64,000 bases of DNA from Diplonema japonicum (lineage: Eukaryota; Protista; Euglenozoa: Diplonemea), in the NCBI GenBank assembly GCA_964019335.1, contig OZ025745.1, positions 1 through 64,000 of the forward strand, read 5' to 3'. The notes under the pieces are model-generated. The model did no database searches. It was not told where the DNA came from and saw only the letters and a list, made by a program, of their open reading frames with translations. Made by a program: the position numbers and the translations under genes. Positions 3,191 to 59,176 of the stretch are shown here, piece by piece (the stretch's first letter is position 1; each line of letters begins with the position of its first letter).

Positions 3191-3236
3191 AGGGCGCCGC
3201 CAACACCGGCCTCCTTTAACTCATATATTTTTTTTT
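3191..3236 (+). mobile_element. Family-B-like retroelement 3' end (hairpin + TCCTTTAACTCATATA + T-tract)
   Basis: TCCTTTAACTCATATATTTT matches the ends of the LINE copies at 19090-19110 and 59153-59176. The upstream stem is GCCG/CGGC instead of GTCT/AGAC. Confidence 0.65.
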
Positions 3237-3439
3237 GTTTCTTTCTTCGCCGTCTTTTTCCCCCGTCTTTTTCCAAAGGCTTGCATTGTTCTTGCGTTCG
3301 TCAAAAAAAAAAAAAAGTAACGTTCTTTCTTCCTCTTGCCCATACACAACAAGCACCACAGGTCTACTCCACCCCCCACACACCACCCCCCCCCCCCCCC
3401 CCCCCCCCACATTTCTACTCTATTTTTACACATTAAAAC

Positions 3440-4537
3440 ATGACATTCCAAGTTCCTTTACAAAACGTGCAATGGGTGCCATGCCCGATGGTACAGATGG
3501 TGAAGCCTGCAGCCGTGCCTATGGGGTACGGCGTGCACGGGGGCTACCCCATGATGGTGCAGCAGGTACCGATGCCGATAAGCCACCAGGTGCAACAGGT
3601 ACAGCAGGTCCCGATCCAACTGGTGCACCCTCACCCCGTGTTGGCGAAGACTACGGAACAAAAAGAGAAACCGGAAAAGCCCGCTGCGGCACCGGTGGCT
3701 GCGGAGCCGGTTGTGAAAAAAACGCACAATTTCAGCTATGTGGACAGCAACATGACACCGTTGAGGGTGAGCGGGAAAACAAAAGCATCAGGGCTTGCAG
3801 GGGCAATTGCGAAAAGACTCCGCATGTGCCAAAGCGTGGCGGTGGAAGCAATGGGAGCAGAGAGCGTCGCCACCACAACAACAGCACTCGCGCTAGCAAA
3901 GACGTTCATAAGCATCGCAAACCTGTCGCTTCTCGTTCAAGTGGAGAGTATTTCAGCACCATCAAGGTCAGCACGCGAAGAAGCTGACCACCCTGGCCTC
4001 AGATTCATGGTTTCTGCGACACTAGAGGACTCTGTCACCACCTACAAACACGATGCAACGAGAAAGGTCCCTGAAGGTGCGCAGGTGGCAAAAATTGCAG
4101 GAAGCATCTCAAAGATGATCAGAACCACTGGAACAGAAGGTGTGATCTGCATGGGGCTTGAGGGCAGTTCTTCTCGCCTTCTGAACACATCTGTGAAGAG
4201 CATTGCTCTGTCCCGTGCAATGCTGCAGGAAAACAACCTTGATATTGTGTTCCAGCCGTACTTTAGAACACCAGATAAGAGGAGTAGTTTGGTTAATATC
4301 ACATTGTTGGTGGTGGCCAGAAAGCCAGGGACTACGCACACCTTCCTGCCCTCGTGTACTGTTTCATCTGAGGGTTCTGCGTCTGACTCGGAGCACGAGA
4401 CCTCATCGAACTCTACAGGGCCTTCGCGCTGTTCTTTAGACGTCAACGTTGATGAGGAGGATGATGATGGCCCCCCGCTGCTTCTCCCTACTGAAGATAT
4501 TATCGAAGGGTTGAATAAGTACCTTGAGAACTTTTAG
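3440..4537 (+). CDS. Protein with two tandem SpoVS-like (Alba-like fold) domains and a Gln/Pro/Val-rich N-terminus
   Basis: LRVSGKTKASGLAGAIAKRLR..VEAMGAESV..ALALAKTF and RKVPEGAQVAKIAGSISKMIR..SVKSIALSRAML..DIVFQPYF both match the SpoVS pattern (KVS..VAGAIA..AIGA.AVNQAVKAIAIAR). Confidence 0.8.
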   Translation: MTFQVPLQNVQWVPCPMVQMVKPAAVPMGYGVHGGYPMMVQQVPMPISHQVQQVQQVPIQLVHPHPVLAKTTEQKEKPEKPAAAPVAAEPVVKKTHNFSYVDSNMTPLRVSGKTKASGLAGAIAKRLRMCQSVAVEAMGAESVATTTTALALAKTFISIANLSLLVQVESISAPSRSAREEADHPGLRFMVSATLEDSVTTYKHDATRKVPEGAQVAKIAGSISKMIRTTGTEGVICMGLEGSSSRLLNTSVKSIALSRAMLQENNLDIVFQPYFRTPDKRSSLVNITLLVVARKPGTTHTFLPSCTVSSEGSASDSEHETSSNSTGPSRCSLDVNVDEEDDDGPPLLLPTEDIIEGLNKYLENF

Positions 4538-4539
4538 GG

Positions 4540-5369
4540 GAGTGGGAGAAGAATGGGAAGGGAAAAAAAAAAAAAAAAAAGAAAAAAGGCGGGAGGGGTA
4601 TTTATACTTCCTGTTTTTTTTTTTCGCAAAAAAAAAAAAAAAAAAAATGGGGAAAAAGAGGGGGACGGAGGAATGGGGGAGGGGGGGGGAGGAGAAAAAG
4701 AATCCAATTAGGTTGTTCTTTATTCTACTTCCCCCCCCCCCCCCTTTCGGTATCCTCTCCCAATGTTTTTTTTTTCTCTCCCGCCTTTTTTTTTTGTTTC
4801 TCGAGAAAAAAAGCGGGGAGAAAAAAAAAAAGAAAAAAAAAAAGCCAACAAAGAAATCCTATTTTTTTTCTGAAATGAGTTTTCTTATGCACGACTTTTT
4901 TATTTACAAAAAAAAAAATGAAAGGAAAAAAAAAACCAAAATGGGAGGGGGGTATAAGAGGGGGGGTGGAAAAATGAGAATGGAGAAAAACAATTCCCTA
5001 TTTTTTTTCCCCCCCCCGCTGGTGATAGTTTTTGACCCTTTTAGTAAACTCTTGGAAGGTTTTTTTTTCATTTTTTGTTTTAAAAAAAGATTTTATTTTA
5101 TTTTTTTTTGCAGTAATTGTCTTCAGATTACCGCAATTTATTTCTTTTTTTTTTTCTTTGAATTTCACACCACAGATTTTTTGTTATTAGCTTACAAGCA
5201 TTTTAACTTGTATGGTTATGTTTATTATTATTTTTTTTTCCACATTTTCCTACCTCCACCCTCTCATATGAAAGCCCGGTTTACGTTTTTTTTATTTTGA
5301 TTCGCGGAATGCTATTAAAAGAAGGAGGGTCTGGAAGAAAAAAAAAAATCAATATCTGTTGAAAGAGCA

Positions 5370-5406
<37 letters not shown>

Positions 5407-8100
5407 CTTGCCCTGCTTTATTCCATTTTTATATCTTATACAGAAGTAAAGATTTCGGCAAAGAAAAAAGGCAGGAAAAGAAAAAAGCAAGGCAAGAAGG
5501 AGAACATAAAGCAGAAAAGTTGGCCCCCAGGTAAGATGCACATTAAAAGAAAAAAAAAAAGAGTTTTTTTGTGTTCCCAAGAAGGAAAAAAAAACGCATT
5601 CTGTAAGGGGTGTTATTATTTCTTTCGCTTTCTCCTTTTTCTTTCCACCCCCCCCCCCCCCCCCCCCCCCCGGAAGGGAAAAAAAAGAAAAAAAAAGTGA
5701 ACCACCACAACAAAAAAAAAGATTATTATCCCACGAAAAGAACAAAAAAAAAATCCCAGAGATTGAAAGAAGGAAGGGGGACTAGGCAAACACTAAAAAA
5801 AAAAACCCCCACACACCTCACCAACCCCTCAGACACCCGAACTACTGCGACACTATTTTTTTTCTTCTTTTCTTTTTTTTTTTCTTCTTTCTTTTTATAG
5901 TTTCTTCTGAGAAAGGTCATAGAGAATTCAAAAAAAAAAGGGGGGGAGGGAAAGTGCACGCAAAAGGGTTCGTGTTTGTGAGTATTGGTGTCGTCGATCC
6001 CACACTTTTTTTTTTTTTTTTTTTAACAATTGAAAACAAAAAACAATCTTTTTTGTTAAAAAAGAAAAGGGAGGGGGGATTATGGTAGAAGATAAACTCA
6101 GGGAGCGCACTCCAGCTTTTCTTTTTGCTGGAGTTGTAAACAGAATAGCAAAAGCTTGGGTGTGACCCCTTTTTTTTTAAAAAAGATTTCTTCGGCCTCC
6201 TTCTTTTTTTTTTTTTTTTTTCTCCCTCTCTCTACCTCTCATTTTTTTTGAACATATAGTTACGGTGTTTAGCCTAGCCCCCCCCCCCCCCCCCCCCCCC
6301 CGCGTCTTCCTTTTAATTCTTTCTCTTAACAAAAAATTAAAAGAAAAAAGATTTTCCTCTGTTTCTGTAGTTCTATCGAGGTGGGTTTTGTTTTTTTAGT
6401 CGCGCTTTTCACACTACTTTGGTCGCAGCCCAACAAAGAAGAAGAAGAAGAAAAAAAAAAAAGAGCCAAATTCTTCACTTGCAATCAATATATTGGACAC
6501 ATATATTTTTTTTTTTTTTCCCTCTTTTTTTTTTCCCCTAAGACTACTTCGCGAAAGAAAAGGAGGAAAGAAAAAAAAAGAAGAAGAAGGAAAAAAAAAA
6601 AGAAAAAAAAAGCCCCCTGGTGGGTTTGCCACAATTGCAATCACTTTGTCACGCTCTTGTGGTGGTTCCATGAGAACCATGGAAGAGCAGTATATGGTTG
6701 CTTTTTGGGTAGTCGTCACCACGAAAAAAAAAAAAAGAAAAAAAAAAAAAAAAAGGAAAAAAAAACGGGGGAGGGGTGTCCCCTAACTCCCCATGTTTTT
6801 GTATTTCGATTTTCTCCTCCCCTCTTTTTCGTTTCTTGTTTGCCTTAGTCGCATTTGAAGCGTTTTTTTTTTTTTTTTTTTTTTTTTTTTTCCCTTACAT
6901 TTCTTTTTTAAACGGTTGGGGGGTAAACAGGTGAATAAACGAGTTTTCAATTCTCACCGCATTTAACTGCTCGAAAAAAAAAAAAAAAAAAAAAAAAAAA
7001 ACAAAAAAAAAACTGTACAGGAAGGAGAGAGGGGAAAAAAAAAAAGAAAAGAAATGAGTGGCAAAATGGGGCCGTCTGAGCTGATATCTTTTTTTTTTAT
7101 GTAGTATTCTTTTTAAAAGACTTGGAGTAGACCCTTGCTGTCCCTGTTTTTACTTGCACTCTCTTGCTTTTCTCTGCTCATTTTCTCTCTTCTTCTTGCG
7201 TCTTCCCTCCCTCCCCCCCCCTCCCCCTCCACCCCTTTGCCATTTCGGCTGAGGGAAGGTAGCGTGAATGGGGGACATCTATAAAAAAATTAAAAAAAAA
7301 AAAAAAAAAAAAAAAACGAGAATAATAATAATAAAAAAAAGCAGTTTGCTTGCATGGTTTTTCTTTTTTTTTTTCTTTTTTTTTTTCTTTTTTCTTTTTT
7401 TTTTTTCCACGGACCGAGGAAAAAAGGGTTCGGCTATGTCGCTAGGGTTGACGGTAATGTAAGGAAAAGTAATCCCCAAATGCCTCGCCACTTTTAGTCA
7501 TTTCGTCAAACATTTAAAATAACAAGAAATCTTTGGGGGAATGGCTGTTGTCTATGCAAATTTGATGAGGATATGGAAAACAAATTCATGGAATAACGGA
7601 TATACGCAGTAGCTACTTTTATTACCCAACATTTGTGACATAGCAGATACCCCTTTTCCCCCCCCTTTTTTTTTCATCTAACTCACTTTTTTCTCCTTAT
7701 TTGAGGCATTACCGAAAAAGAAAAAAAGAAAACCTCTTTTTTTTTTCTTTTTTTTTTCCCCTATGTTTTCCCCCCCTCCCTTCCACCTTTCTTTCCCGAA
7801 AAAGGAAAGGGTGTGGAAGGGGGAGGGCGGAAAAAGCACAAAAAACGCAAAAGAAAAAAAAGAGAAAAAAAAAACAAAAAACAAAAAAAAAAAAAAAGAG
7901 AAGATACCTCCATGTTGAAAAAGAAAAAAAAGAAAAAAGAAAAAAAAAAAAGCATAAGCCCTTTTTTTTTTTTTTTTTTTTTTTTTTGTCCTGCACTTTG
8001 AGTTTTTTTCCCTTCTTTTTTCTTTCTTTTTTTTCCCCCCCTCTCTTACCTTTTAAAAAAGTCTTTTTTGTTGTTGTTGCTTCGAACTTTAAAAAAAAGA
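4540..8100. repeat. Low-complexity intergenic region of A/T/C/G homopolymer runs
   Basis: Dense poly-A, poly-T and poly-C tracts; the only ORFs are K/F/P-rich artefacts. Confidence 0.85.
7985..8002 (+). mobile_element. Family-A LINE 3'-terminal stub (TTTGTCCTGCACTTTGAG) between T-tracts
   Basis: Identical to the last 18 nt of the family-A copies ending at 14871 and 16385. Confidence 0.65.
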
Positions 8101-9119
8101 AATATGAGCTCGTCCGAAAAAAAATGTCAACACTTTTTTGGGCACCTCCGAAAATTGCTTGTTTTGATTATTTGAGCAAAAAAAGGGCAGCATGCAACCA
8201 TAGGAAGATGACATATATGGTGTACCTGTTGCCGTTCTTTCAATTGCGATGCTTGTTTTGCCATGAGGGTGGCAACCGGCTGCCCCCGGGAAGCGAAAAA
8301 CAGAGGTCAGAAAAACGACGAAAAATGTTTAAAATGCAGTTTAAAAGCTTGAAATGCAGCACCTAGGGTGCATAAAAGTGGTGAACACACACCTTTGTGA
8401 CCTCTGGGCACAACCCAGGGTCGGGTTACTGTTAAAAGTACTTAGCGAAAAATATATGGCGTTGCATAGCCCCCAAAAAACCGGTTTTTTTTAGCCCTAT
8501 TTTTTGCTTTTTCGAGGGGTTCCTAAGGGAATTGCCTGAAAGGCCTATTTTCCTGAAAACCCAATTCTTAACACTTGCCTGCTCAACATCGGTATCTTTG
8601 GGGCCAAATATGCACTATCTGCTGAGGTTTGTCATCTTTTTTCTTACTCATGACAAATTAAAAATTGAGAAGTTTGCTTTTAAAGGGCCCTTAAGGGATT
8701 TTAGCGGCATTGTAGCCTAAAATAGGCAAAAATGGCAGTATTTTCCCCACCCCATTTTAATAGTGATAAAGAGCCCAAACCACCCAAAATGACCCCTTAA
8801 GTTTCACAGATTTCCCATCTGCGTCCATTTCTTCTCGCTTTTCATTGAAGAAAACAAAAATAAAATATGGAGCCTGGCATTTACAATTTCCGGATGCCAA
8901 AAACTAAAAAAAAAACCATTCTAAAAAGCATGTTTTTGCACGCGCGTTTTAGAAATGAAACAAACGGCGCATTGTGACCTATATGGTGAAGCACACTTAG
9001 ACCGCAATTCTGCACACAAAGTGGTGTCGGACTACTTTTGTACTTAGAAGTTTTCCGAGGGTTTTCCATTGCAAAAGAGGGTCATTTGTTGACATTTTTT
9101 TTTCAGACGAGCTCATATT
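8101..9119. mobile_element. Non-autonomous TIR DNA element (MITE-like, about 1 kb)
   Basis: AATATGAGCTCGTCCGAAAAAAAATGTCAACA (8101-8132) is an inverted repeat of TGTTGACATTTTTTTTTCAGACGAGCTCATATT (9087-9119), with 1 mismatch and 1 homopolymer indel. The interior is non-coding and compositionally distinct from the flanks. Confidence 0.75.
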
Positions 9120-9168
9120 AAAAAAAAAAGGGAGAAGGATAAAACAAAAAAACAAAAAAAAAAAAAAA

Positions 9169-9735: not shown

Positions 9736-9807
9736 TATTTTTTTTATTTATTTTTTTTTTTACACGGAAGCGACGCACACGAAGCCCGTCCCCGGGAACC
9801 GGGCCCG

Positions 9808-10527
9808 ATGATGCGCCCTGCTGCCGGGGAGGAGATGATGGACGACTCCGAAGATGACTTGGGTCCCCCCCCAACTGACGATGACACCGACATCGACTTG
9901 GACGAGGGCCCCGCCGACATCGACTTGGACGAGGGCCCCGCCGACATCGACTTGGACGAGGGCCCCGCCGACATCGACTTGGACGAGGGCCCCGCCGACA
10001 TCGACTTGGACGAGGGCCCCGCCGACATCGACTTGGACGAGGGCCCCGCCGACATCGACTTGGACGAGGGCCCCGCCGACATCGACTTGGACGAGGGCCC
10101 CGCCGACATCGACTTGGACGAGGGCCCCGCCGACATCGACTTGGACGAGGGCCCCGCCGACATCGACTTGGACGAGGGCCCCGCCGACATCGACTTGGAC
10201 GAGGGCCCCGCCGACATCGACTTGGACGAGGGCCCCGCCGACATCGACTTGGACGAGGGCCCCGCCGACATCGACTTGGACGAGGGCCCCGCCGACATCG
10301 ACTTGGACGAGGGCCCCGCCGACATCGACTTGGACGAGGGCCCCGCCGACATCGACGACTGCCTGGGCAAGGGCATCTGCCACGTCTACAACGGGACATA
10401 TCAATGCTGGAAGGGTGTATGCCACTACTGCGGCGGGAACATCACAAAGAACAACCCAGCACAGACCTGCATATTACCAGACTGCAAAAGGGTAAAATGC
10501 CGCGGGTGCGAACAATGCGAACAATGA
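9808..10527 (+). CDS. ORF1-like: acidic (DIDLDEGPA)17 repeat plus Cys-rich putative zinc finger; probably 5'-truncated
   Basis: The frame is open back to the T-tract at 9763 and ends in a CHYC...C..C..C..C cluster. Same reading frame as the RT ORF. Confidence 0.6.
   Translation: MMRPAAGEEMMDDSEDDLGPPPTDDDTDIDLDEGPADIDLDEGPADIDLDEGPADIDLDEGPADIDLDEGPADIDLDEGPADIDLDEGPADIDLDEGPADIDLDEGPADIDLDEGPADIDLDEGPADIDLDEGPADIDLDEGPADIDLDEGPADIDLDEGPADIDLDEGPADIDLDEGPADIDDCLGKGICHVYNGTYQCWKGVCHYCGGNITKNNPAQTCILPDCKRVKCRGCEQCEQ
9889..10356 (+). repeat. Perfect 27-nt tandem repeat, 17 copies plus 9 nt (GACATCGACTTGGACGAGGGCCCCGCC)
   Basis: Direct inspection; no spacers. Confidence 0.97.
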
Positions 10528-10620
10528 CTCCATGAGGGCTCCCCCCAAACCCACCCCCCAAACCCATTCCCTCCGCCCCGTTCCCATCCTTCCAAATACA
10601 ATCCGATACGCTTATCTGAC

Positions 10621-13600
10621 ATGAAATTTGAACGTCTCACCGAACAGGGTATCGAACCCCACCCCGGACCAGAGCCAGAACACGAGAAATTCACCATTTT
10701 CACACACAACGGCTCATCACTTAACAACAGGCTGAGCGAGTACACCACCGTCCTCACGGACGCATTCTGCATCCAGGAGACAGCCCTCACGGCTCAGACG
10801 CAGCTGGAAATCGAACACGTGCTGAGAGACGATGACTGGGGCAAACGATACGCCAGATTCTGGAGCAAGCCACAGCCAGGCAGAGAGACCAGTGGTGTCA
10901 CATCTCTGACGATAGCGAAACGGGGTGGTCTAGGAACCCTGGTGAAGAAACCACGTACGGCGGTGCGCTGTGAAACGAATGGGCCGCACAAGGACAGGTG
11001 GTCACACGTGAAGATCTCACTCGATGGAAGCAAACGGTGGCTTCACCTGATCAACGTCTACTGCCACTCGGGCCAGGACCAAGCCAAGACGAAATACCGT
11101 GAAGAGCTTCTCCACTACATCCTTTGCCGTCTTAAGTTCGAACTGGGAGACGTGCCTGTGGCCGTGGTGGGCGATTTCAACACGGACGAAGTACGATCCC
11201 CCACGTTAAGGCAAGCTATACAGACAGACTGGGTAGACGCCGCTGCGTTCTGTGCAAGAAGGGATGGTGTACAGGCGGAGGACACGTTCGTTAGGACCAA
11301 CTGCAGCACGAGGATTGACAGGGTCCTGCTGAATAACATCGCGGCCCAAGGTCTCGAACATTGCGGAGTAAACGATATGATCACCGGGTCGGACCACCGA
11401 TGCTTGTCGGTGACACTCAACATCCCAGCTTTTCGTCAACAAGTCCTGAGGTACACCATCCCACAGGAGATACCGAAGACCAAGAAGGCGCCTGGCGAGG
11501 TGGCGAAGGCACTGATGCAGAAGTCGAGGTACCGGGAGTTCATAGCAGCACAGGAGCCCACCGAAGCTTTCTCGGAGATATCAGACCTCGCAGAGGAGTA
11601 CCTATTACATGGGTACAAGGGGACGACGCGCAGCGTGTACACCGGGAGAGGCAAAGTACGGGAACCTACGAAATCGGAGCTAAGTGCGAGGTCGGCGGAG
11701 TCGGCGGTCGGAGCGGCATCGAACAGACAACAAAGACTGGAAAAGCTGAAGCACAAGATCCGCAGTGCGAAACAGCAAATGCTAAGGCTTTATGAAAACG
11801 GACACTGCGGCCCGCTGCCGGTAGAGTTACGGAACGTCCTCAGAAATATTGCGACTCTAGGAGAAGAACTGAAGGTTGACAACTGCCAGGTGGACGCGAC
11901 AGGGGGTATCGACAGCATCAGGGAGGAGCTGGACATAGCAGAGGACTTCGCTCAGGGAATGCTATCAGAGCTACTCCAATACCGCAAGAGAATGCAGACG
12001 AAGGCCTACGAACGCTCAGTCCGTGCTGACTTTGGGGAAGAACGCAAGCACATCACAGCCTGGGTCAGAGACCGCCCAAACCAGAGAACGGACGTGGTTG
12101 AGGCAGCAGACGGAGGGGTGACGGCGAACCTACAGGAAATGGACAAGGTGATGCGGAACGCGTGGTCGGGCGTCTTCTGTGCGCGAACACCCGAGGAAGA
12201 GCCACAGTATGAGCGGTTTGCACAACGTTACGGGGACCTGATCAAGAAAGCCCCAATGGCACGGACTCCCATCACAGCAGAACAGCTGAGGGAAGTAATC
12301 AGGAAGAAGCCGGAGAAAGGAGCATGTGGCGTGGACGGTTGGCGGATGAGTGAACTGAAGCGTCTCCCAACGAGCATCCTGAAGGCTTTCGCAGACCTCT
12401 TCAACCTGATCGAGGAAACAGGCCAGTGGCCGAGACAGATCACGACAGCCCTGGTGTCCCTGATTCCGAAGGGTGAGGGGTCAGCACCACTGAATCATCG
12501 TCCCATCACAGTGACCAGCACCATCTACCGCTTGTGGGCGTGTACGAGGCTGAAGGGTGTCCTTGACTGGCAAGAACGCTGGATCACGCCGAGACAGCAC
12601 GGGTTTCGACCCAAACACAGTACGACAACTGCCCTCATGGAGTTATGTACCAAGCTGGAACTTGCTCTGGTGGAAGGAGAACCGCTGGAAGGACTAGCCC
12701 TAGACTTTCGGAAATGCTTCGATCTAGTGCCACAATGGCTGTCTCTCGACCTCATGGACGCCCCGGGGATGGACCAATCCATAGGGAGAGCACTCCAAGG
12801 GATGTACACCCAAATCACAAGGAGGTTCAAGTACCCCATAGGAGTGGGAGATACGTTTGAGACAACGAACGGAATTCTCCAAGGATGCCCCCTGTCAGTC
12901 ATCGTCGTCAACGCCCTGTTGTCCATCATGGTGCGGGCAGTCGAGCAAGTCGCGCCAGACGCCGAAGTGCTAGCCTACGCTGACGACGCATACCTGCTGG
13001 CAAAGCTGCGTGGCTCACTACAAGCTGCGGTCAATGGGACATTGGAGTTCTGCGACCTGACGGGGATGGAAATCAACAAGGAGAAGACTGTTGGTTTCGG
13101 CACTGCTGAAGATTTCAAGTCGAAAGTCATAGGAAACCGAACGGAGATGAGGAAAGGCTTGGAGGTCGCGGTACCCTACAAGACGGTGACAGACCTCTGC
13201 GGACTGGGGGTGAAGATCAACACACGCAGGACAGGAACGACGTGGAATAAACCGACCACGGGGGCGCTTGGCTCGCTGGACCGACTGGGGGGCACAAGGA
13301 TTGCTTTCGAAACCAAAGCACACTTGGTCAGCACGACGGTCCTGCCATCTTGCCTATACAGTGGGCCGTTCTCCCCTCCATGTGATGAGGCACTCAGGAA
13401 GCTAACGACGAAGATCACTTGTAACCTGTGGGGCCCTCATCACCGTGGACGGTCGCCCACCGCGGTAAACACAGTCCTGCTGAAGGGGCACACCAATGAC
13501 CCCCTTTCCTACGTAATGTACCACTCCCTGAAGGTAGTATCCGGAGCACTCGATGACAGTCGGCTACGGCAGAGATGCATACAGATCGCTGCGAGGTATG

Positions 13601-14814
13601 ACGCGGGTTCCATCCCGATGGGGCCGGTTGGCAACCTGGTCTGCCGGTGGCTTCCCCGAATAGGATGGAGTTGGGCGCAGCTACTAGGTTGCAACACATC
13701 TTGGACCGAACGCGGACACATCTTTAGAGAGGTGGTGAGGAAGGCCCGAAGTAGGACGCTGGCGGTCGAGAGGAGCACGATAAGCGGGATAGAGCCGGGG
13801 GCGGACCCCAAGACGAACCGACTATGGAGGACGGCCAAGGACCCGCTCATGTCCTACAGCCTGAGACGAGTGATCGCAGGAGGGGTTCCCTACCTAAACC
13901 CGCACGCAAATGCGAACCGAAAGAGCGTCCCACTGGCGCCTGAAGGTGACGACAACGGTGACGACGAGGAGAACATGGGCCAGGCACCAACGACGGAGGT
14001 ATCGCACACGCAAGGATTCAGATGCGACCTGTGCAAGTCACCACACCCGGACACGGTGACCTTACTCCGCCATCAGCTGTATGAGTGCGCCTGTGCACAA
14101 GAGGAACTGGCACTAGACGGAATGGAGCCGTTGCGCAACAGATCAGGATGGCCCCTATGTCTGGAGCTGCACGCGATACTGCCGAGGGGGCATGTCTTCG
14201 CACACCTGGAGAAGCTGCAGCGATACATGGCTGTGGTGGTCGGGAAACGGGATGTGGAGCTCATGCAAATAGACAACGCCAGCACACAGCCGCTGCCGTG
14301 GGTACGCGATGTGGAGGGAAGGAGATGCCTCGTGCCGACGGCGGGGGAGCTCGAAGGAGTGGGAGGAATCGTCGCAGAATTCTTGAACCCGCTGCTGCAG
14401 TGGTTGTCACAGCTACGACGGGTGAAGGAGGACACCAGCTCTGAAGTGTCAGCGGTGGAATTGGCCATCGACTTCGAATGGACGACAGGCAAGTTACTGG
14501 GAGGTCTGCTGGAAGATAGGGCTCGCAAGATCAAAGCACTGATAAGAAAGCTGAACGCGGCATGCAGAGCACGGAAGAAGCCACGCCCCTTCCCGGCGGA
14601 TGAACAGAAGAGAGTGAAGTCCCTCATCGCAATAGGTGGGAAAACGACTATGGGTTTCGCCAGGAGGCCCATCTTCGCCACCCACTCCACGCACGACAAG
14701 CTGATGGAACTGAAAGCCGCTTACAAGCGAGACCGCATCACGCGACTCCGCAAGACGCTCAAGGCCTCGATTGGAACGAAAGCAATGCTCCAGAAGGGGA
14801 GTATAAATAGATAG
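10621..14814 (+). CDS. LINE ORF2: 2A-like peptide, AP endonuclease, reverse transcriptase, CCHC knuckle, C-terminal domain
   Basis: Intact 1397-aa ORF carrying the motifs listed above; no RNase H domain recognised. Confidence 0.92.
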   Translation: MKFERLTEQGIEPHPGPEPEHEKFTIFTHNGSSLNNRLSEYTTVLTDAFCIQETALTAQTQLEIEHVLRDDDWGKRYARFWSKPQPGRETSGVTSLTIAKRGGLGTLVKKPRTAVRCETNGPHKDRWSHVKISLDGSKRWLHLINVYCHSGQDQAKTKYREELLHYILCRLKFELGDVPVAVVGDFNTDEVRSPTLRQAIQTDWVDAAAFCARRDGVQAEDTFVRTNCSTRIDRVLLNNIAAQGLEHCGVNDMITGSDHRCLSVTLNIPAFRQQVLRYTIPQEIPKTKKAPGEVAKALMQKSRYREFIAAQEPTEAFSEISDLAEEYLLHGYKGTTRSVYTGRGKVREPTKSELSARSAESAVGAASNRQQRLEKLKHKIRSAKQQMLRLYENGHCGPLPVELRNVLRNIATLGEELKVDNCQVDATGGIDSIREELDIAEDFAQGMLSELLQYRKRMQTKAYERSVRADFGEERKHITAWVRDRPNQRTDVVEAADGGVTANLQEMDKVMRNAWSGVFCARTPEEEPQYERFAQRYGDLIKKAPMARTPITAEQLREVIRKKPEKGACGVDGWRMSELKRLPTSILKAFADLFNLIEETGQWPRQITTALVSLIPKGEGSAPLNHRPITVTSTIYRLWACTRLKGVLDWQERWITPRQHGFRPKHSTTTALMELCTKLELALVEGEPLEGLALDFRKCFDLVPQWLSLDLMDAPGMDQSIGRALQGMYTQITRRFKYPIGVGDTFETTNGILQGCPLSVIVVNALLSIMVRAVEQVAPDAEVLAYADDAYLLAKLRGSLQAAVNGTLEFCDLTGMEINKEKTVGFGTAEDFKSKVIGNRTEMRKGLEVAVPYKTVTDLCGLGVKINTRRTGTTWNKPTTGALGSLDRLGGTRIAFETKAHLVSTTVLPSCLYSGPFSPPCDEALRKLTTKITCNLWGPHHRGRSPTAVNTVLLKGHTNDPLSYVMYHSLKVVSGALDDSRLRQRCIQIAARYDAGSIPMGPVGNLVCRWLPRIGWSWAQLLGCNTSWTERGHIFREVVRKARSRTLAVERSTISGIEPGADPKTNRLWRTAKDPLMSYSLRRVIAGGVPYLNPHANANRKSVPLAPEGDDNGDDEENMGQAPTTEVSHTQGFRCDLCKSPHPDTVTLLRHQLYECACAQEELALDGMEPLRNRSGWPLCLELHAILPRGHVFAHLEKLQRYMAVVVGKRDVELMQIDNASTQPLPWVRDVEGRRCLVPTAGELEGVGGIVAEFLNPLLQWLSQLRRVKEDTSSEVSAVELAIDFEWTTGKLLGGLLEDRARKIKALIRKLNAACRARKKPRPFPADEQKRVKSLIAIGGKTTMGFARRPIFATHSTHDKLMELKAAYKRDRITRLRKTLKASIGTKAMLQKGSINR

Positions 14815-14934
14815 CCCCCCCAACCCACCCAAGGGCGGCCCTCCATGAGGGGGTTTGTCCTGCACTTTGAGTTTTTTTTTATTTTTTTTTTTTTTTTTCC
14901 CGAATACGAATCAAAAAAAAAAAAGGAAAAAAAA

Positions 14935-15303
14935 ATGACTGAAAAAGAGAAGACATGGTACGACCAGTTCAAAATGGAGCGGTGCACGAATGCTGACGAG
15001 AGTGCCTGGCGTGTTGATTCAGGTCCCATCTACAACATCCCCAGCAGGTGTAAAGGGTTTTTCGGGAGGTTTGCGGGGATGTACTTTGACACCCTGCCGG
15101 CAGAGCGGGAGGCTCAGCGGTTGGAAGGCGAAGAACGAGACTGGGGCTACGGGGGCATCCATGAAGGCGCCGCCCCCTGGTCAGACCGCCCCCTTCCACC
15201 CGCACCCCCCACCACGGAGGACGACATCATCCCCACACGGGTGGAGTTCGTCACCCTGAGCGGGGCGGTCATCAGCAAGCCGTTGAAACCTTTAAATGAA
15301 TGA
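14935..15303 (+). CDS. Hypothetical protein (122 aa)
   Basis: ATG after an A-rich leader and a T-tract; coding-like composition. Confidence 0.6.
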   Translation: MTEKEKTWYDQFKMERCTNADESAWRVDSGPIYNIPSRCKGFFGRFAGMYFDTLPAEREAQRLEGEERDWGYGGIHEGAAPWSDRPLPPAPPTTEDDIIPTRVEFVTLSGAVISKPLKPLNE

Positions 15304-15373
15304 ACATGGAAATACAAAAGGTTTTCTTTTGTAAAAAAAAAAAAAGTGACTCTTTCCCCCTCTTTTTTTTTTT

Positions 15374-15411
15374 CTAGGCGATCCTGTCACATACTGCAGG
15401 TTCCTTTCAAA
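15374..15411 (+). mobile_element. Family-C 3' stub CTAGGCGATCCTGTCACATACTGCAGGTTCC(T/C)TTCAAA
   Basis: Near-identical to 26470-26507. Its 3' part equals the end of the LINE fragment at 47221-47246. Confidence 0.7.
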
Positions 15412-15534
15412 ATTATTTTTTTTCCTTTTTTTTTTTCGTCTGTTTCTTTGCTGAGAATCAAACTGGGATGAGGGGTATATGTGTTTATTTGTTGATCAGT
15501 TTCTATGTGCAATTTTTCTTCTTTTTTTTTGGGG

Positions 15535-15562
15535 GGGGGATCTCGCAGAAGTACAGCAGAAA
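15535..15562 (+). mobile_element. 28-nt piece of a family-B LINE
   Basis: GGGGGATCTCGCAGAAGTACAGCAGAAA equals 58776-58803. Confidence 0.75.
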
Positions 15563-15565
15563 TTG

Positions 15566-16385
15566 CACCCGGACACGGTGACCTTACTCCGCCATCAGCT
15601 GTATGAGTGCGCCTGTGCACAAGAGGAACTGGCACTAGACGGAATGGCGCAACAGATCAGGATGGCCCCTATGTCTGGAGCTGCACGCGATACTGCCGAG
15701 GGGGCATGTCTTCGCACACCTGGAGAAGCTGCAGCGATACATGGCTGTGGTGGTCGGGAAACGGGATGTGGAGCTCATGCAAGTAGACAACGCCAGCACA
15801 CAGCCGCTGCCGTGGGTACGCGATGTGGAGGGAAGGAGATGCCTCGTGCCGACGGCGGGGGAGCTCGAAGGAGTGGGAGGAATCGTCGCAGAATTCTTGA
15901 ACCCGCTGCTGCAGTGGTTGTCACAGCTACGACGGGTGAAGGAGGACACCAGCTCTGAAGTGTCAGCGGTGGAATTGGCCATCGACTTCGAATGGACGAC
16001 AGGCAAGTTACTGGGAGGTCTGCTGGAAGATAGGGCTCGCAAGATCAAAACACTGATAAGAAAACTGAACGCGGCATGCAGGGCACGGAAGAAGCCACGC
16101 CCCTTCCCAGCGGATGAACAGAAAAGAGTGAAGTCCCTCATCGCAATAGGTGGGAAGACGGCTATGGGTTTCGCCAGGAGGCCCATCTTCGCCACCCACT
16201 CCACGCACGACAAGCTGATGGAACTGAAAGCCGCTTACAAGCGAGACCGCATCACACGACTCCGCAAGACGCTCAAGGCCTCGATTGGAACGAAAGCAAT
16301 GCTCCAGAAGGGGAGTATAAATAGATAGCCCCCCCCCAACCCACCCAAGGGCGGCCCTCCATGGGGGTTTGTCCTGCACTTTGAG
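15566..16385 (+). mobile_element. 5'-truncated family-A LINE copy (3' 0.8 kb)
   Basis: Nearly identical to 14044-14871, with an 8-nt deletion near 15647. Confidence 0.92.
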
Positions 16386-18247: not shown

Positions 18248-18732
<485 letters not shown>

Positions 18733-19110
18733 GCGAGGAGATTGCATGGACTGATGAAGAAGATCTGGCACACATGGGAGCTAGGAAGGGTACTGAAGAA
18801 GGTGAAAGGAAGGAGGGCCTTCCCAGCTGAGCCGTGCACAAGGGTGCACACACTACGATCCATCGGGAGGACAAAGGCGGTGATCGGATGGAACAGGAGG
18901 GCGATATTTGCATCACCGAAGACCAAGCATGACCTAGAGGCGTTGAAAGGACAATGGGCAAGAGAACGAAGAGAACGAGCGGCCAGGCTGGGGAGAAGGC
19001 CGGCAAGACCACCAAAGGAGGAGAAACCGCTGCTGAAAGGGATAGGTGCAGGTAGAAGATGAGAACAAGGGGGCGTCTCACAAAAGACTTCCTTTAACTC
19101 ATATATTTTT
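18733..19110 (+). mobile_element. Family-B LINE 3' fragment
   Basis: Nearly identical to 58804-59176. Confidence 0.92.
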
Positions 19111-26419: not shown

Positions 26420-26469
26420 ACGGGGGGGAGGGGGAAAGGGTGGGGCAAGCGTGTTAATTATTCTTTTTT

Positions 26470-26583
26470 CTAGGCGATCCTGTCACATACTGCAGGTTCC
26501 CTTCAAAGACATCTTTTTTTTTTTTTTTTGTTAGCACCCCCGTAGGGCGGCCCTCCAGAAGGGAGCTTGTCCTGTACTTTGAG
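26470..26583 (+). mobile_element. Stacked 3' stubs: family C (26470-26513) and family-A-like (26532-26583), separated by a T-tract
   Basis: The first stub matches 15374-15411. AGGGCGGCCCTCC..TTGTCCTGTACTTTGAG matches 14832-14871. Confidence 0.75.
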
Positions 26584-46201: not shown

Positions 46202-46236
<35 letters not shown>

Positions 46237-46682: not shown

Positions 46683-47253
46683 AGACCATTCCGACCGGGG
46701 AACCTCTTAACCCCGAAGCCTCTCCCTTGGTACCACGAGCATGGGCTGCAGAAGAAATACTTCCCAGGCCTAATCCCATTTGTCCTCAACTGGTTGAATG
46801 CCCTAAAATGGGGCGAGGAAGGCGGGCAAGTTTCTAAGGCGGAACTAGCAGTCGACCTCATTGCAACGGAAAGGCTCCACATGGGTGGGGAAGACATAGC
46901 GTGCTGGGCGAGAAAGCTCGGCAGGATTCTCAGCGTCTTAGAAAGGATCCATCTAAAAGGGACGGGGAATCATCTGATTCCGGCAGAAACTATGAAGTCA
47001 GTACACTCACTACGCACCCCAGGGCTCCACAGCCATGCCGTCACTGGTACTCCACTCGTCCGATCTTCGCGTCCCCGAAGGTCACCCACTCGATCCTAGA
47101 GGAGCAAATGCGAACGCATTGCATCCTCAACAACTCGCTAGTTGGTTTCACGCCCAAGCTGCTGATGAGAAACTACGACGGGCCTAAGGCACTACCACGA
47201 CGGGCCCAAGGCACTACCACGTCACATACTGCAGGTTCCCTTCAAAGACACCC
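46683..47253 (+). mobile_element. Degenerate 3' fragment of LINE family C
   Basis: WLNALKW..VSKAELAVDL..VHSLR..(frameshift) YSTRPIFASPKVTH aligns by eye with the C-termini of families A and B. It ends in GTCACATACTGCAGGTTCCCTTCAAAGAC plus a T-tract and carries a 22-nt tandem duplication at about 47175-47221. Confidence 0.75.
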
Positions 47254-51712: not shown

Positions 51713-51851
51713 AACCCAACCTTTTAGAAACCCCCTTTATTTTTGTATCTTTTATCTTTTTTTTATTTTTTGCGTGCAGCCAAGCATCTTTCAAAACTCT
51801 CCGTCTGCTGCCACTCATGCGTATTAGGGACTGAATTACATAAGGGTGTTG

Positions 51852-52448: not shown

Positions 52449-52473
52449 TCATCACAGAACAGAAGATACAAAG

Positions 52474-52782: not shown

Positions 52783-52834
52783 TAGTGGTATTGTTTGGCG
52801 CACTTCCCTTTGGCTATGATTGTATAGGTTACAC

Positions 52835-53923: not shown

Positions 53924-53985
53924 TGTCCTGATATCCCTCCCCCCTTTTTGTATGCCAGTGGTTTCACTCCGCACCACAGGTTATA

Positions 53986-56493
53986 ATGACAATCTCTATC
54001 ACGATCCCTGCGAAGTCTATCATCATTATCGCCGCCTTTGTGTCAACAACGGTGTCGCTAATAGCGGGGTTGCTGCTGTACCAGGAGTCCATCACTGCAC
54101 TTTACGATACTGTAGATGAGATAAGCTTGAGCAAGGCGAGCGATACATCGCAAGTGATTCGCAGTGAGTTCGAATACATCAAGACACACGCACAGACGCA
54201 GGGCAAATATATCCTCTACACCAACGTATCGAGCCCCATGGAGCTCACTACAACTTTCGGAAAGAGATCATGGGCTCACTTCATGAGCAGTAATGCCAAA
54301 GGGGTGTACGCCCTAGCCTGCCGCCTTGTGAAAGACATCAATGGTACTGCAACAGGTACCCAGCCTTGGGAATCACCTGACACCTTGATAGCTATGAACA
54401 ACTGGGTAAACTTCGGGGTGGATTCAGTTGAGCCGAGGGAGCTTGTGTACTACCCGAACATATTCACCGCGTTGTCCTTGTACAACAGCACTAGCGAGAC
54501 GCATGCTATGCGCTTTAGCGAGGTCGACCCCACCACAGGTGACACTACGCCGACAGGCAGCAGTGTTGACATCGATGTCCGTGTGCTTGTCGAGGAGATG
54601 GCAGCATCTCGTCCCGATGGCAGGTGGGGCAAAGTTGTCGTGGGTGGAAGCAGGGCCAAACTCAAGGCTAATGTTCATCTCTTCTGGGATCTCACGTTCC
54701 CCGAGGCCCCCAGGTCGCTGCCTGGGTGGACGTTGCAGCTCACCGCGTACATGACATTCCGTTTGTGGCCCACCATTTTAAGCAATTACAAAGGGGTGGA
54801 CGACTCCATGTTCGTGTTGGACTTGTCAGGAGACAAGCTGTACGCGCACACGCTGTTCAACGACGTACCTGTCAAGGGAAACTGCACTGTGATCGATAGC
54901 AGCGACCTCGCAATACACTACGGAACCCGCCTTTGTCCGCTGTCACCTGGTGATCTCGGTCCCACTGTGCAGGGCGCAATCCAAAGTGCCAAGGACGTGG
55001 GACCCGGGAGGTTTTACACGCGAAGTCTCGACAGCACCAACTTTATATTTACTGTGAAGTACCGGGAAAACCAGACTGCCAGGAGCCTTGGTATCGACTT
55101 GGGGATAGAAGACGTGCCGCAGCGCATTGTACTCGACGGCGGAGAGTACTTCTTGCGGCTCTCGTCTATTTACTCCTTCGATAGCAATAACACAGGTATA
55201 GAACTACTCTGGATGCGCCCCGTGAGCAGCGTCAGCGACAAGGTGCTGTCGGCGCTCATCCAATTCATCCTCTTCTGCGTCGTGATATTTGTGTTCGACG
55301 CGTTGATTGCAGTGATCGAGATGTTGTTCCTCACGATGCCCCTCGGAACCCTTTCATCTGCTATATGTAGTTTGCAAGAAATGGACTTGGTCGAGGCTCG
55401 CAGGAAAGCCGAACTGACAACGAGTATCATATCTGTGTCAGAGGTACATGTTTTAAAGATGGGGCTGCTGTTTGCGTGCAGCAATCTGGAAGAGTACAAG
55501 GCCTACCTGCCCGATAGCGTCTTCGAAGTGTGGGAGAGCACGGAAGACGAGACCAAGTTCAGCAAGATGGAGGAGTCGACAGAAGTAAGCAAAGCGAACA
55601 GCAAATCATCGAACAAAAGCAGGTTGAGCAACGAACGGGCAAGGCTTCCAACAACGAGGTTGGTGCATATCTACAACAGAGCGTGCTTGTGCTTAGTGCA
55701 CGTCCCGTTGCTTGCCATGCCTGTGATATACGGGGGCGAGGCAGATTTCGGGATGAGGTTCTCAAGGTGGCTGAGCATAATGGAGGCGAACGTAGCCGCC
55801 ACACGCGGCTTGTTCCTCGGGTTCGGTGTTGCGAGCTGCAACAACTTTGTCGTTTCGTGGAACATCACCACACGGTGCGACACACCTGTACAACGTGCTG
55901 CCAACTGTATGTTCTCCGTGATCGAAAAAAATAGTGAGTACGATCTGGACGCCCCTGCCATAGCCGCGGGTATTGTGATGGGCAAGGTGACGGCGGGGAA
56001 CCTGGGAAGCGACACAAAAAGGGGTTTTGCTGTAGGTGGACCTGCAATTGATTCTCTAGAAGGTGTGTGCCATGTTGCAAAGCAGCTTGTCGTGCAGTTG
56101 GGCATCTCAACAGTGACGGTGTCCAATACGGCGGCTGAGAGCATGTTGGGTGAATTCTTAGTCTGTCCTTACTCTGTGTTTGATTACGGTTCTCTGGTGC
56201 CCGAGATCGTATTTGTTGTCACAGAACGTGTGACGGAAAGGGGAAAGGAGTGGATGTACATGTTGGAGGAGGTGGAAGACAGCGTTTCCATGAAGGTGTT
56301 CGACCTCTTCAAAAAGATCAGAAGGAAGGCGGCCACACCCGCGCTTTTGGAACAAGTCATCGGGGTTCTTGAGAAGAACAAGGGGAAGTTCCCGGTTTTC
56401 GTCCCCTTGATTCGGAAGCTGCAGGAATGCGCTGGCGATCCCTTAGCGCTTATGGAGATGTGGGCACATGCGGCGTTGATTCCTTCAAGCTAA
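53986..56493 (+). CDS. Receptor-type (2 TM, extracellular sensor) degenerate class III nucleotidyl-cyclase-like protein
   Basis: TM-sensor-TM-HAMP-like layout, YKAYLP, AGIVMGKVTAGNLGS..RGFAVGGP, EWMY. Metal-binding Asp residues are not evident. Confidence 0.65.
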   Translation: MTISITIPAKSIIIIAAFVSTTVSLIAGLLLYQESITALYDTVDEISLSKASDTSQVIRSEFEYIKTHAQTQGKYILYTNVSSPMELTTTFGKRSWAHFMSSNAKGVYALACRLVKDINGTATGTQPWESPDTLIAMNNWVNFGVDSVEPRELVYYPNIFTALSLYNSTSETHAMRFSEVDPTTGDTTPTGSSVDIDVRVLVEEMAASRPDGRWGKVVVGGSRAKLKANVHLFWDLTFPEAPRSLPGWTLQLTAYMTFRLWPTILSNYKGVDDSMFVLDLSGDKLYAHTLFNDVPVKGNCTVIDSSDLAIHYGTRLCPLSPGDLGPTVQGAIQSAKDVGPGRFYTRSLDSTNFIFTVKYRENQTARSLGIDLGIEDVPQRIVLDGGEYFLRLSSIYSFDSNNTGIELLWMRPVSSVSDKVLSALIQFILFCVVIFVFDALIAVIEMLFLTMPLGTLSSAICSLQEMDLVEARRKAELTTSIISVSEVHVLKMGLLFACSNLEEYKAYLPDSVFEVWESTEDETKFSKMEESTEVSKANSKSSNKSRLSNERARLPTTRLVHIYNRACLCLVHVPLLAMPVIYGGEADFGMRFSRWLSIMEANVAATRGLFLGFGVASCNNFVVSWNITTRCDTPVQRAANCMFSVIEKNSEYDLDAPAIAAGIVMGKVTAGNLGSDTKRGFAVGGPAIDSLEGVCHVAKQLVVQLGISTVTVSNTAAESMLGEFLVCPYSVFDYGSLVPEIVFVVTERVTERGKEWMYMLEEVEDSVSMKVFDLFKKIRRKAATPALLEQVIGVLEKNKGKFPVFVPLIRKLQECAGDPLALMEMWAHAALIPSS

Positions 56494-57102
56494 TTTCATC
56501 GCCTTCCGGCGTTTGAGAAAGTTTTATTTTTTTCTTTTTCTTCTTTTGTTTTGTTTTTTTTGGTTTTGTTTTTGTATTTCTTTTTGTTTTTTTTTCCCCC
56601 TTCTTTTTTGCGCGCAAAAGACATTTAATTATTATTCATGGCGAAGAACAAGATTCATTTCACTTATTGAGTACTTGCTACCCTAGAAATGTCACATGAA
56701 AAAAAAAAGTTTCACCGCCCCTCCCCTCCTCTCACCACCCCCCCTGCCGCCAACGCCTCGAATGACAAAGCTTCGCAAGGGGTGATTTGTTTCCGATCTA
56801 GAACCCGGAGCATGGGCTACATTCGGGGTATTTTTTTTTGGCGGGCCGTTGCTAACCACTTCGTTCCTATCATAGTGAATTTTTTTTATTTTCTTTTTCC
56901 AGTTGATGGGGATAACATCGAGGTTGTTCGCTGTTGGTGTTTGTGCAGGACACCTACACCGGCTTCCTTGGTCTCGCACACGGTAAGTGGTTTTATTTCA
57001 CGACTCTCTGAAATTACTTCAACTACGAGGGAGCAAAAGAGGTGACAAGGGGTAAAACAAGAGAGGGGTTACAATTCTCAATACAAGTCTCCCTTTTTTT
57101 TT

Positions 57103-59176
57103 GGAATCCTTCAGGGATGCCCGATTTCAGTGGTACTCATCAACGCGCTGTTGGCGGTACTAATGAAGCAGGTGGGGAACGACACAGGGGTCCGCTCGCT
57201 GTCTTACGCGGACGATGCATACCTCTTGGCACGGCTCGGTGCGGCGTTGCAGGAAGGCGTAGACGCAGTGGAAGCCTTCTGCAAACAGGTGGGGATGAAG
57301 CTCAACACCAGGAAGACGAAGACCTTTGCAGTGAACAGGAAGACACCGGAGGTGAAGGTGAAAGGCGAGGAACTGCAGCCGACACGGACTGTAGGAGTAC
57401 TGGGAGCCAAGCTGCGGACAGACGGCAGGCCGCAAACCAACGGCGACAGGACGGCGGAGGCACTCGGGACGCTGAGCAGGCTGGGAGCAACGCCGTTGTC
57501 CTATCAGCAGAAGGCGAAGATCATCAGCAGCACGATCCTACCGAGCTGCCTCTACGACTGCCCATTCTCACCGCCGAAAACGGGACAAATGGCCACGCTG
57601 GTGAAGGAGACCACGTACGCGCTCTGGGGGCAGAAGTACTGCACCAGGAACCCAGGCACAGTACTGTCCGTGACACTGCCGGGACACACGAGCCACCCAC
57701 AGATGACAGCCGCATACAGAGCACTTATGCTCCTATACAGAGCCTGCAAGAAGGACGACAAGCTGTGGACACGCTGCGACGCCATTGCCAAACGGTACAG
57801 CGGGAAGAAGATACCGCTGGGGCCGGTGGGCATCATGATGGAAAGGTGGCTGCCTCAGATCAAGTTAAGCTGGGCACAGCTGAAGGACACCCACGCACTG
57901 GAAAAGGAGCCCTACAAGCGCTACATCAGGGACCGACTCAGGCGGGCGGAAGCACAGGAAATCATGAGCAAACGGAGCACCATGGGGGGCATGGAAGCGG
58001 CAGCAGCGGAGACCAACGCGCTGTGGAGGAAGCTGGTGGTGACGGACCCGATTGCAGCAAAGGACGTGCGAAGGATCATCACGGGGGCAGTGTTCTACAT
58101 CAACCCACGGGGATGGCGCACGGACACGGTGGAGCACATCCCGATGGCGGAAGGAGAAGAAGACGAGGATGAAGACGAGGCGGAAGATGAACAAGAAGAA
58201 GAAGAAGAGGAAGGACAGGACACCGAAAAGTGGCTGATTGCGGAGGCGAGGAAGCAAGAAGCTAAGCAGGCCGAACCCACGACGGCACACTGCGACATCT
58301 GCGGTCAGGAGCAACAGCTGCCCAACATGCTGGAGCACGCAATGTGGGAGTGCGAAAAGGCCAAGGAAGTGCAACACGAAGGCATGACGCGCAGGGGGCT
58401 GGAACCGTGTACGAAGCTGCATGGCATCCTGCCAAGGGGAGCAGGGAAGGATGTCAGGGAAAGGCTCGAAGGAACGCAGAGGTACCTGCTGGCGGTGGTG
58501 GGGGAGCGGGACGCAGCCCTACAAGCGAAGAGGCAGGAGGTGTACCACACACACCAGTGGCTGGAGATCACACAAGGTCAAGAACACCCAGTACCGTCGG
58601 ACAAGGACTTCGGCAAGCTACCGACAGGGGATGTCCTACGGGAGTACACAAAGGAGGTGCTGAGGTGGATGCGGCAACTGCGCTGGTATGCAGGCAGCAG
58701 GAACACGTCAGTGTCGACGGTGGAGCTGGCACTGGATTTCGAGAACGTGACCGGGAAGACCCTTGGAGGGAAGCTGGGGGATCTCGCAGAAGTACAGCAG
58801 AAAGCGAGGAGATTGCATGGACTGATGAAGAAGATCTGGCACACATGGGAGCTAGGGAGGGTACTGAAGAAGGTGAAAGGAAGGAGGGCTTTCCCAGCTG
58901 AGCCGAGCACAAGGGTGCACACACTACGATCCATCGGGAGGACAAAGGCGGTGATCGGATGGAACAGGAGGGCGATATTTGCATCACCGAAGACCAAGCA
59001 TGACCTAGAGGCGTTGAAAGGACAATGGGCAAGAGAACGAAGAGAAAGAGCGGCCAGGCTGGGGAGCAGGCCGGCAAGACCACCAAAGGAGGAGAAACCG
59101 CTGGGATAGGTGCAGGTAGAAGATGAGAACAAGGGGGCGTCTCACAAAGACTTCCTTTAACTCATATATATTTTTT
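57103..59176 (+). mobile_element. 5'-truncated family-B LINE (RT C-terminal half, CCHC, C-terminal domain, 3' UTR)
   Basis: Begins directly after T9 with GILQGCPIS, then YADD and CDIC..HAMWEC. Paralogous to family A. Confidence 0.92.

Follow-up and report, generated by a model that had tools for sequence, protein, structure and literature searches.

Several families of long interspersed elements (LINEs) in the diplonemid Diplonema japonicum, together with a 314-nucleotide (nt) partner that resembles a short interspersed element (SINE), are followed by T-rich tracts that appear to be the duplicated target of their insertion, and not a tail that belongs to the elements. We studied them in a 64,000 nt stretch of genomic DNA (positions 1 to 64,000 of contig OZ025745.1, GenBank assembly GCA_964019335.1; hereafter 'the window'), which belongs to contig C98 of the 62.5-Mb assembly, and in sequence sampled beyond it (~280 kb of genome plus pattern matches). 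We consider it probable that these families, which encode an APE-type endonuclease, and their SINE-like partner integrate by target-primed reverse transcription (TPRT) into T tracts that serve as the target, that a 3' hairpin guides this process, and that the orientation of the inserted copies is tied to transcription domains.

The long open reading frames (ORFs) listed for the window lie nearly all on the + strand. One of them, ORF2 at positions 10621–14814 (1397 amino acids), matches the Pfam family Exo_endo_phos at residues 47–259 (E = 1.7e-8) and RVT_1 at residues 615–826 (E = 3e-19). With an APE endonuclease located N-terminal to a reverse transcriptase (RT) within a single ORF, the families are APE-type retrotransposons lacking long terminal repeats. 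Their copies behave as LINE copies do: they share a constant and exact 3' end, are truncated at many points at the 5' end (the shortest being 40-nt stubs), and are flanked by target-site duplications. We refer to the families as A, A2, B, B3 and C; A2 is a subfamily that is 79% identical to A, and the proteins of A and B are ~35% identical. A preliminary description of this DNA, made from its sequence, had proposed related LINE families, all on the gene strand; the APE and RT domains found by Pfam and the + strand copies found by BLAST of the elements against the window agree with it. The family-A copies that carry much of the following argument, with the flanks of the longer one, are:

9762–14871, + strand: family-A LINE copy (Pfam and comparison of genomic copies)
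9738–9761, + strand: T-rich putative target tract 5' of that copy, T8-A-T3-A-T11 (flank sequence)
14872–14898, + strand: T-rich tract 3' of that copy, T9-A-T17 (flank sequence), read as duplicated or pre-existing target and not as a tail
15566–16385, + strand: 5'-truncated family-A fragment, corresponding to the last 829 nt of the element (BLAST against the window), that ends in GAG and is then followed only by TTTATTTT
26544–26583, + strand: 40-nt stub of subfamily A2 with the hairpin variant GGGAG-C, ending GTACTTTGAG and followed by TTTGTTTT; an A2 copy in locus L076 has the same end

All 30 of the family-A ends that were retrieved terminate in CCTGCACTTTGAG, followed by a T run of 3 to 38 nt. 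Both flanks were obtained for 21 family-A copies (8 full-length or long, and 13 short and truncated); T-rich sequence lies on both sides of each of these copies, and the 3' flank begins with TTT in all 21. Exact duplications of at least 5 nt that include a base other than T were found for 6 of the 21 true flank pairs, as compared to 7 of 420 mismatched control pairs. These six duplications are TTTAT, TTTGT, TTTCTT, TTTGTT, TTTCTTTT and TTTCTTTTCTTT. Wherever the tract is interrupted by another base, the sequence following the GAG of family A repeats the last bases before the element, and no added T was found between GAG and the duplication in the family-A copies with both flanks. The duplications are 5–8 nt long wherever they can be measured, and one family-A copy is embedded in a long (TTTTC)n microsatellite that continues on both sides of it. 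Exact duplications that contain non-T bases, at a frequency far above that of the control pairs, argue that the T tract is a pre-existing target that was duplicated upon insertion. The preliminary description had instead treated the tract as a tail that replaces poly(A); that view is not sustained, since the tract corresponds to target at every site interrupted by a non-T base, and the T runs are at those sites explained as pre-existing sequence.

Genome-wide tallies of element ends, drawn from pattern matches with 100 sites listed for each pattern, extend this result to the other families. Among the matches listed, TTT follows the family-A end at 96 of 100 sites (the others reading TTA, TAT, CTT and TAT), with 3' T runs that range from 0 to 20 or more; family C ends with CAAAGACA(T/C)C, next to TTT at ~94 of 100 sites; and the B and SINE ends read CTCATAT(AT)n, with n ranging from 0 to at least 9, usually with a T run next and with none at ~10–15% of sites. 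No poly(A) was found in more than 300 listed ends of A, B/SINE and C. Families A and C are tail-less, and the tail of B and of the SINE is (TA)n.

Two observations weigh against our reading of the tract as target. Within pure T runs, a templated T is indistinguishable from duplicated target, and several copies have a longer T run on their 3' side than on their 5' side (38 versus 31, 27 versus 24, and 11 versus 6), which may leave room for some slippage or template-derived T. Such longer 3' runs would be expected if the RNA ended in a true U-rich tail, standing in for poly(A), that was reproduced in each new insertion and paired with an A-rich primer strand. That explanation also accounts for the presence of T after the copies and for an A-rich primer end, and a similar model has been described for EhLINE1/SINE1 (PMC1635306). 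We nevertheless regard it as highly unlikely: at the six interrupted tracts the sequence after GAG is the exact duplicated target with zero added T; the T runs shrink to 0 at some sites, with TTT missing from 4 of 100 A copies among the matches listed; (TTTTC)n flanks one copy on both sides; and the fraction of listed B/SINE copies given above has no T run at all.

If the tract is target, as we favor, the position of the first nick can be deduced. In ~95% of copies TTT opens the duplication right behind the final base of the element, indicating that the complementary (bottom) strand would be nicked just after AAA, to leave an A-rich primer with an AAA-3' end. An L1-like, poly(A)-dependent LINE would have a poly(A) tail and a T-rich primer end; here poly(A) is absent and the deduced primer end is AAA-3'. 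The geometry of the duplications thereby bears out an earlier proposal that A-rich DNA primes reverse transcription with a polarity inverse to that of L1, and the proposed targeting of sense-strand pyrimidine (T) tracts in unidirectional gene arrays holds as well. So do, within the window, the absence of poly(A), the T-rich tract after each copy and the start of independent inserts after a T run.

The second component of the proposed mechanism is a structure at the 3' end of the elements. In every family the last ~40 nt fold into a two-part stem that ends 10–16 nt before the terminus; beyond an outer stem, AGG(G)...(T/C)CCT, come an internal loop of one base, a 4–5 bp inner helix and a loop of 4–8 nt. 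The elements and hairpins compared here, in addition to the family-A copies listed above, are:

14832–14861, + strand: family-A 3' hairpin, AGGGCGG-C-CCTCC / ATGA / GGGGG-T-TTGTCCT, located 10 nt before the element end
57103–59165, + strand: 5'-truncated family-B LINE, inserted after T9, with the tail CTCATAT(AT)n followed by T6
59132–59158, + strand: family-B 3' hairpin, AGGGGG-C-GTCT / CACAA / AGAC-T-TCCTTT
2904–3217, + strand: 314-nt SINE-like non-autonomous element (search for genomic copies), directly after T15 (2889–2903)
3191–3215, + strand: SINE 3' hairpin, AGGG-C-GCCG / loop / CGGC-C-TCCT (minimum-energy fold)
15375–15411, + strand: family-C stub (extreme 5' truncation) consisting of the hairpin AGGCGATCCTG...CAGGTTCCTT plus terminal bases, within a T tract
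26471–26516, + strand: family-C stub ending CAAAGACATC, then T16
46683–47253, + strand: 5'-truncated family-C copy, inserted after T12, ending CAAAGACACCC, then T8

The hairpin sequences that the preliminary description quoted for A, B, C and an end at position 3191 are exact. For family C this applies to the hairpin itself; the copy at 46683–47253 has lost the 5' arm of the structure through an internal deletion. The end at 3191 had been called B-like, with a compensatory exchange of its inner helix. The exchange is present, and the sequence is in fact the 3' end of the 314-nt SINE-like element, which terminates in CCTTTAACTCATATAT (the same tail as that of LINE B) followed by T9. At least 40 full-length copies of this element, from 1456 first-look candidates, were scored at 98–99% identity. 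The sequence that it has in common with family B is confined to the last ~40 nt, comprising CCTTTAACTCATAT(AT)n and the hairpin architecture. By that shared 3'-terminal sequence and stem-loop, the 314-nt element and family B would constitute a LINE/SINE partnership of the stringent type.

The shared tail makes positional homology within the B group unambiguous and allows the inner helices to be compared directly, in what was a manual, structure-guided comparison of few sequences. On an identical tail, the helices GTCT/AGAC (B), GTTCC/GGAAC (B3) and GCCG/CGGC (SINE) are each fully Watson–Crick paired, and 3 of 4 inner-helix positions change on both sides within this group yet stay paired; an old SINE variant, GCCA/TGAC, has one mismatch and one compensated pair. 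Between A and A2, changes occur at 1 of 24 stem positions versus 6 of 18 non-stem positions (p = 0.03). The pattern argues that the hairpin in B and the SINE is real and under selection, and homology of the hairpin across A, B and C is likely.

Three points count against a conserved recognition structure. Single hairpins fold no better than shuffled sequences (z −2.45 to +0.56); RNAalifold returned no consensus structure for a MAFFT alignment of all families, an outcome that we attribute to MAFFT misaligning families whose stem lengths differ; and the case for homologous hairpins in A, B and C is based on manual comparison of few sequences. The hairpin might then be a coincidence of GC-rich ends, or plain sequence inheritance, with no role in recognition, and the small number of independent sequences is in keeping with that view. 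We find it rather improbable, given that three different helices are paired on the same tail and outer stem, that a fourth retains a compensated pair, that A and A2 have conserved stems but divergent loops and flanks, and that the SINE retains from B only the hairpin and tail. The compensatory change noted earlier is upheld, by the manual comparison, for the inner helices of B, B3 and the SINE, and is weaker when A, B and C are taken together.

The third component is orientation. All 10 inserts in the window lie on the gene strand, as determined by BLAST against the window. For the flanks of other copies, strands were called with a codon-usage classifier trained on the window genes, giving 36 calls with the element strand and 7 against it; the 22 strong coding-strand calls are without exception on the strand of the element. 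Two of the seven antisense calls are artefacts of a (GAAAA)n array and the rest are weak; an antisense call that stemmed from the poly-Lys reading of a T44 run was discarded as a classifier artefact. Co-oriented host genes identified with Pfam encode an ABC transporter, UTP25, a CRAL_TRIO protein, an ankyrin protein and two adenylate cyclases. In the loci retrieved around family-A copies, co-resident A, B and C family members and SINEs all have the same orientation, as do LINEs of an RNase H-containing type (described below) in loci L054 and L026.

The same pattern is visible genome-wide in the sites and strands returned by queries with A, B, C and the SINE. Neighboring sites on one contig lie on the same strand in 139 of 148 cases (p = 4e-31), and 34 of the 40 contigs with at least 3 sites carry them on one strand only, while overall strand use is balanced. 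Orientation thus follows chromosome-scale domains. Many large contigs (C1, C2, C7, C8, C11, C12, C14 and C15) have, among the matches listed, '-' sites on their left and '+' sites on their right, which suggests one divergent strand switch per chromosome-sized contig, with all elements pointing towards the ends. Runs of at least 8 T and at least 8 A are present on the element strand in near-equal numbers (103:72 in the window and 166:153 in 94 kb of other flanks), so target supply cannot explain the bias, which exceeds it more than 20-fold; the preliminary description had reached the same view of target availability. Its term 'strictly co-oriented' is accurate for the window, and genome-wide the bias is very strong with rare exceptions. 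At C40:454169, a SINE copy that is old (88% identity) runs antisense to an ORF of 480 codons and to the '+' domain in which it lies, and a fragment of an RNase H-containing (D-like) LINE is opposite to its neighbors on C52. A young SINE at C91:272249 gave no clear strand call.

Such a bias could arise if insertion into T runs were blind to strand and antisense copies were later removed by selection within transcription units. The equal availability of T and A runs means that antisense copies must be either removed or prevented, and both the existence of rare antisense copies and the orientation of Leishmania SIDER2, which is mostly that of the transcription units (PMC2424063), are compatible with removal. 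The rule is kept, however, by 40-nt stubs, by A ends that are 100% identical and by SINEs that are 98–99% identical, and the clear antisense SINE is old and has hence long been tolerated. We therefore judge selection after insertion to be somewhat unlikely as the source of the bias. Because the youngest copies and the 40-nt stubs are co-oriented and the clear exception is old, we infer that the strand bias is probably set at insertion.

Combining these components, we propose that the elements would insert by TPRT into T-rich tracts with an ...AAA-3' end as primer. The RT would find its template through the conserved two-part 3' hairpin (an AGG(G)...CCT base and a variable inner helix) in the manner of stringent LINE/SINE pairs, and would begin synthesis precisely at the final base of the element; the AAA end of the primer may pair with as many as three read-through U residues. 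Every insertion would re-create the T tract on both sides. A sense copy would be transcribed with the gene array and would have a polypyrimidine tract ahead of it for trans-splicing, which would explain the spliced-leader-like head of family A (see below). The choice of strand would be made at insertion and would be coupled to transcription or replication. One specific form of such coupling, in which a ribonucleoprotein is recruited to polypyrimidine tracts during transcription and nicks the template strand, is on present evidence improbable; recruitment could proceed via the trans-splicing or polyadenylation machinery on the nascent U tract, or via a weak rU:dA hybrid.

The full family-A element is 6839 nt long and consists of a 38-nt, spliced-leader-like head (ACCAACGATTCTAAAGCTACAGTTTCTGTACTTTATTG), a 747-codon ORF1, an in-frame stop and ORF2. 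The window copy at 9762–14871 begins at position 2161 of this element and contains the last part of ORF1, in which a 27-nt tandem repeat is expanded, followed by ORF2 (10621–14814) and the 3' end CCTGCACTTTGAG. It is 5'-truncated and not full length; other genomic copies reach 2.2 kb further in the 5' direction. Within 9880–10360, in the end of ORF1, it has ~17 tandem 27-nt units (GACATCGACTTGGACGAGGGCCCCGCC), the repeat itself being located at 9887–10356, and the reference full-length copy has far fewer. At the 5' junctions of full-length copies (L054–L062), 2–3 extra bases, CC or CCA, are present in 5 of 8 cases between the upstream T run and the spliced-leader-like head, outside of the duplication.

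Two further family-B segments and a short SINE derivative complete the inventory of the window:

15535–15562, + strand: 28-nt family-B piece (B positions 1674–1701; BLAST against the window)
18733–19106, + strand: 3' part of the split family-B copy, with hairpin; tail CTCATATAT, then T6
56900–56985, + strand: tentative short derivative after a T-rich tract, with boundaries taken from this copy alone

The first two are parts of one B copy, which breaks off after 15535–15562 and resumes at 18733 following a 3.2-kb interruption. A G9 run (15526–15534) separates a T9 run from the beginning of this split copy and may be untemplated filler at a 5' junction. The longer B copy (57103–59165) encodes the C-terminal half of the RT and a downstream domain, with 35% protein identity to A. 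Repeated insertion into one T tract builds head-to-tail stacks, as at window positions 26471–26583. At C50:414645 and C82:334067, only T6 or T8 separates a family-A end from the SINE head or C stub that comes next. Another LINE, found at L054:1980–5850 and L026:2399–3373, matches RVT_1 strongly, is RNase H-like in its C-terminal part and is 27% identical to the A RT. Its copy in L054 ends GTTATTATTGCAA directly before T18, and the association with T tracts is thus wider than families A–C.

Copies of the SINE (window 2904–2990, and loci L006, L011, L020, L055, L077 and L078) all begin at one identical position, preceded by a T run, and their head reads (C/A)AGGTGGTGGGGATAACATG...CATCAGATGTGTTGTTCGCTGTTGACC. 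The 5' GGTGGTG of the element could pair with a downstream CATCACC. Rfam searches found no ribozyme or other family in the window at gathering thresholds, or in the SINE region at E values up to 1. In the derivative at 56900–56985 a SINE-type head (GGGGATAACAT...GTTGTTCGCTGTTG) is fused with a short hairpin-like tail, and a SINE-type head upstream of an A head in L055 is joined to a different tail, GGGTTGCAATCAAAGCCTCATTTC. With one type of head found on different tails, heads and tails appear to be exchangeable modules.

The closest relatives of the RT in protein searches are diplonemid proteins (45–90% identity), the closest named ones being those of Diplonema papillatum, and RT proteins that are 73–90% identical are present in EukProt transcriptomes. 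A related organism carries family A at ~93% identity, and carries the small gene at window positions 14940–15319 at ~97%. The transcriptome matches and the ~93% family-A match together indicate that family A is common to relatives and is expressed there. In a PDB search L1 ORF2p and R2 were equally distant from the RT, and clade searches by protein atlas, whole-protein homology and PDB gave only generic LINE matches. The LINE families probably form part of an extensive radiation specific to diplonemids.

In the sea, diplonemids rank with the most abundant eukaryotes. The genome paper of D. papillatum lists LINE-like gene models and leaves transposons uncharacterised (PMC10161547). The elements described here show how LINEs can be adapted to a genome with chromosome-long transcription units and trans-splicing. 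Landing in inter-gene T tracts spares coding sequence; with the tract re-created on both sides, the neighboring gene would keep its signal and the element would gain one; and a spliced leader is carried in the DNA of the element itself. With this orientation bias, a coupling of integration to transcription or replication can be put to a clean test, and the strands of the elements offer a quick map of the direction of transcription along chromosomes. If the strand were indeed chosen co-transcriptionally, a LINE would be sensing the direction of transcription, and would in this way ensure that it is expressed and trans-spliced in a genome that lacks gene promoters. Since the T tract appears to be duplicated target and not a tail, these findings represent an unusual form of the known TPRT mechanism, and not a new kind of element.

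Several known systems share individual features with these elements. Stringent LINE/SINE pairs (UnaL2/UnaSINE1, and the CR1/L2 type) have a conserved 3' stem-loop and a short repeat tail; family B and the SINE are alike in having a conserved 3' stem-loop, a (TA)n repeat tail and a SINE that shares only the 3' end of its LINE, although recognition of the hairpin by the RT is here presumed by analogy. Those families are not known for a target preference or an orientation bias. Human L1 also combines APE with RT, uses TPRT at a homopolymer T:A tract, and produces 5' truncations and short duplications. In L1, however, a T-rich DNA end pairs with poly(A) to prime synthesis, whereas the primer here would end in AAA-3' and poly(A) is absent.

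The ingi/L1Tc elements have poly(A) tails. They and SIDER2 resemble the elements described here in residing in euglenozoan hosts with polycistronic transcription, and the majority of SIDER2 copies in Leishmania point the same way as the transcription unit in which they lie (PMC2424063), as do the copies studied here. The ingi/L1Tc elements carry a 77-nt Pr77/ribozyme head (PMC3185411); in our case there is no Rfam ribozyme match, no RNase H in family A by Pfam, and no poly(A).

EhLINE1/EhSINE1 of Entamoeba histolytica are similar in their lack of poly(A), their T-rich insertion sites and a LINE/SINE pair that shares its 3' end. EhLINE uses a restriction-enzyme-like endonuclease, unlike the APE-type endonuclease found here, and the nick here would fall inside a T tract. 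The nicking consensus of EhLINE is GCATT, and in the model for EhLINE1/SINE1 the RNA has a T-rich 3' end that base-pairs with the bottom strand, which is A-rich (PMC1635306); pairing of a T-rich 3' tail with an A-rich bottom strand is therefore not new as a concept.

A close parallel, judged by features, is with the T-ended retroposons related to RTE (RTE/Au), in which the target-site duplication begins with T beside a T stretch and a compensated 3' hairpin is common to LINE and SINE (PMC6007223). The two systems share TTT or T-rich 3' ends in place of poly(A), a duplication that starts with T, a compensated 3'-terminal hairpin of LINE and SINE, and terminal bases that correlate with the first base of the duplication. 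They differ in that the T bases here would belong to the target and not to the element, in that family A has a 747-codon ORF1 before ORF2 (a typical RTE has no ORF1), and in the spliced-leader-like head and near-total co-orientation with genes observed here. What is particular to the D. japonicum elements is that a SINE partner and a spliced-leader-like head occur together with a tail-less end, joined to a T tract that appears to be duplicated, and with an orientation bias that is far above target supply and extends over chromosome-scale domains.

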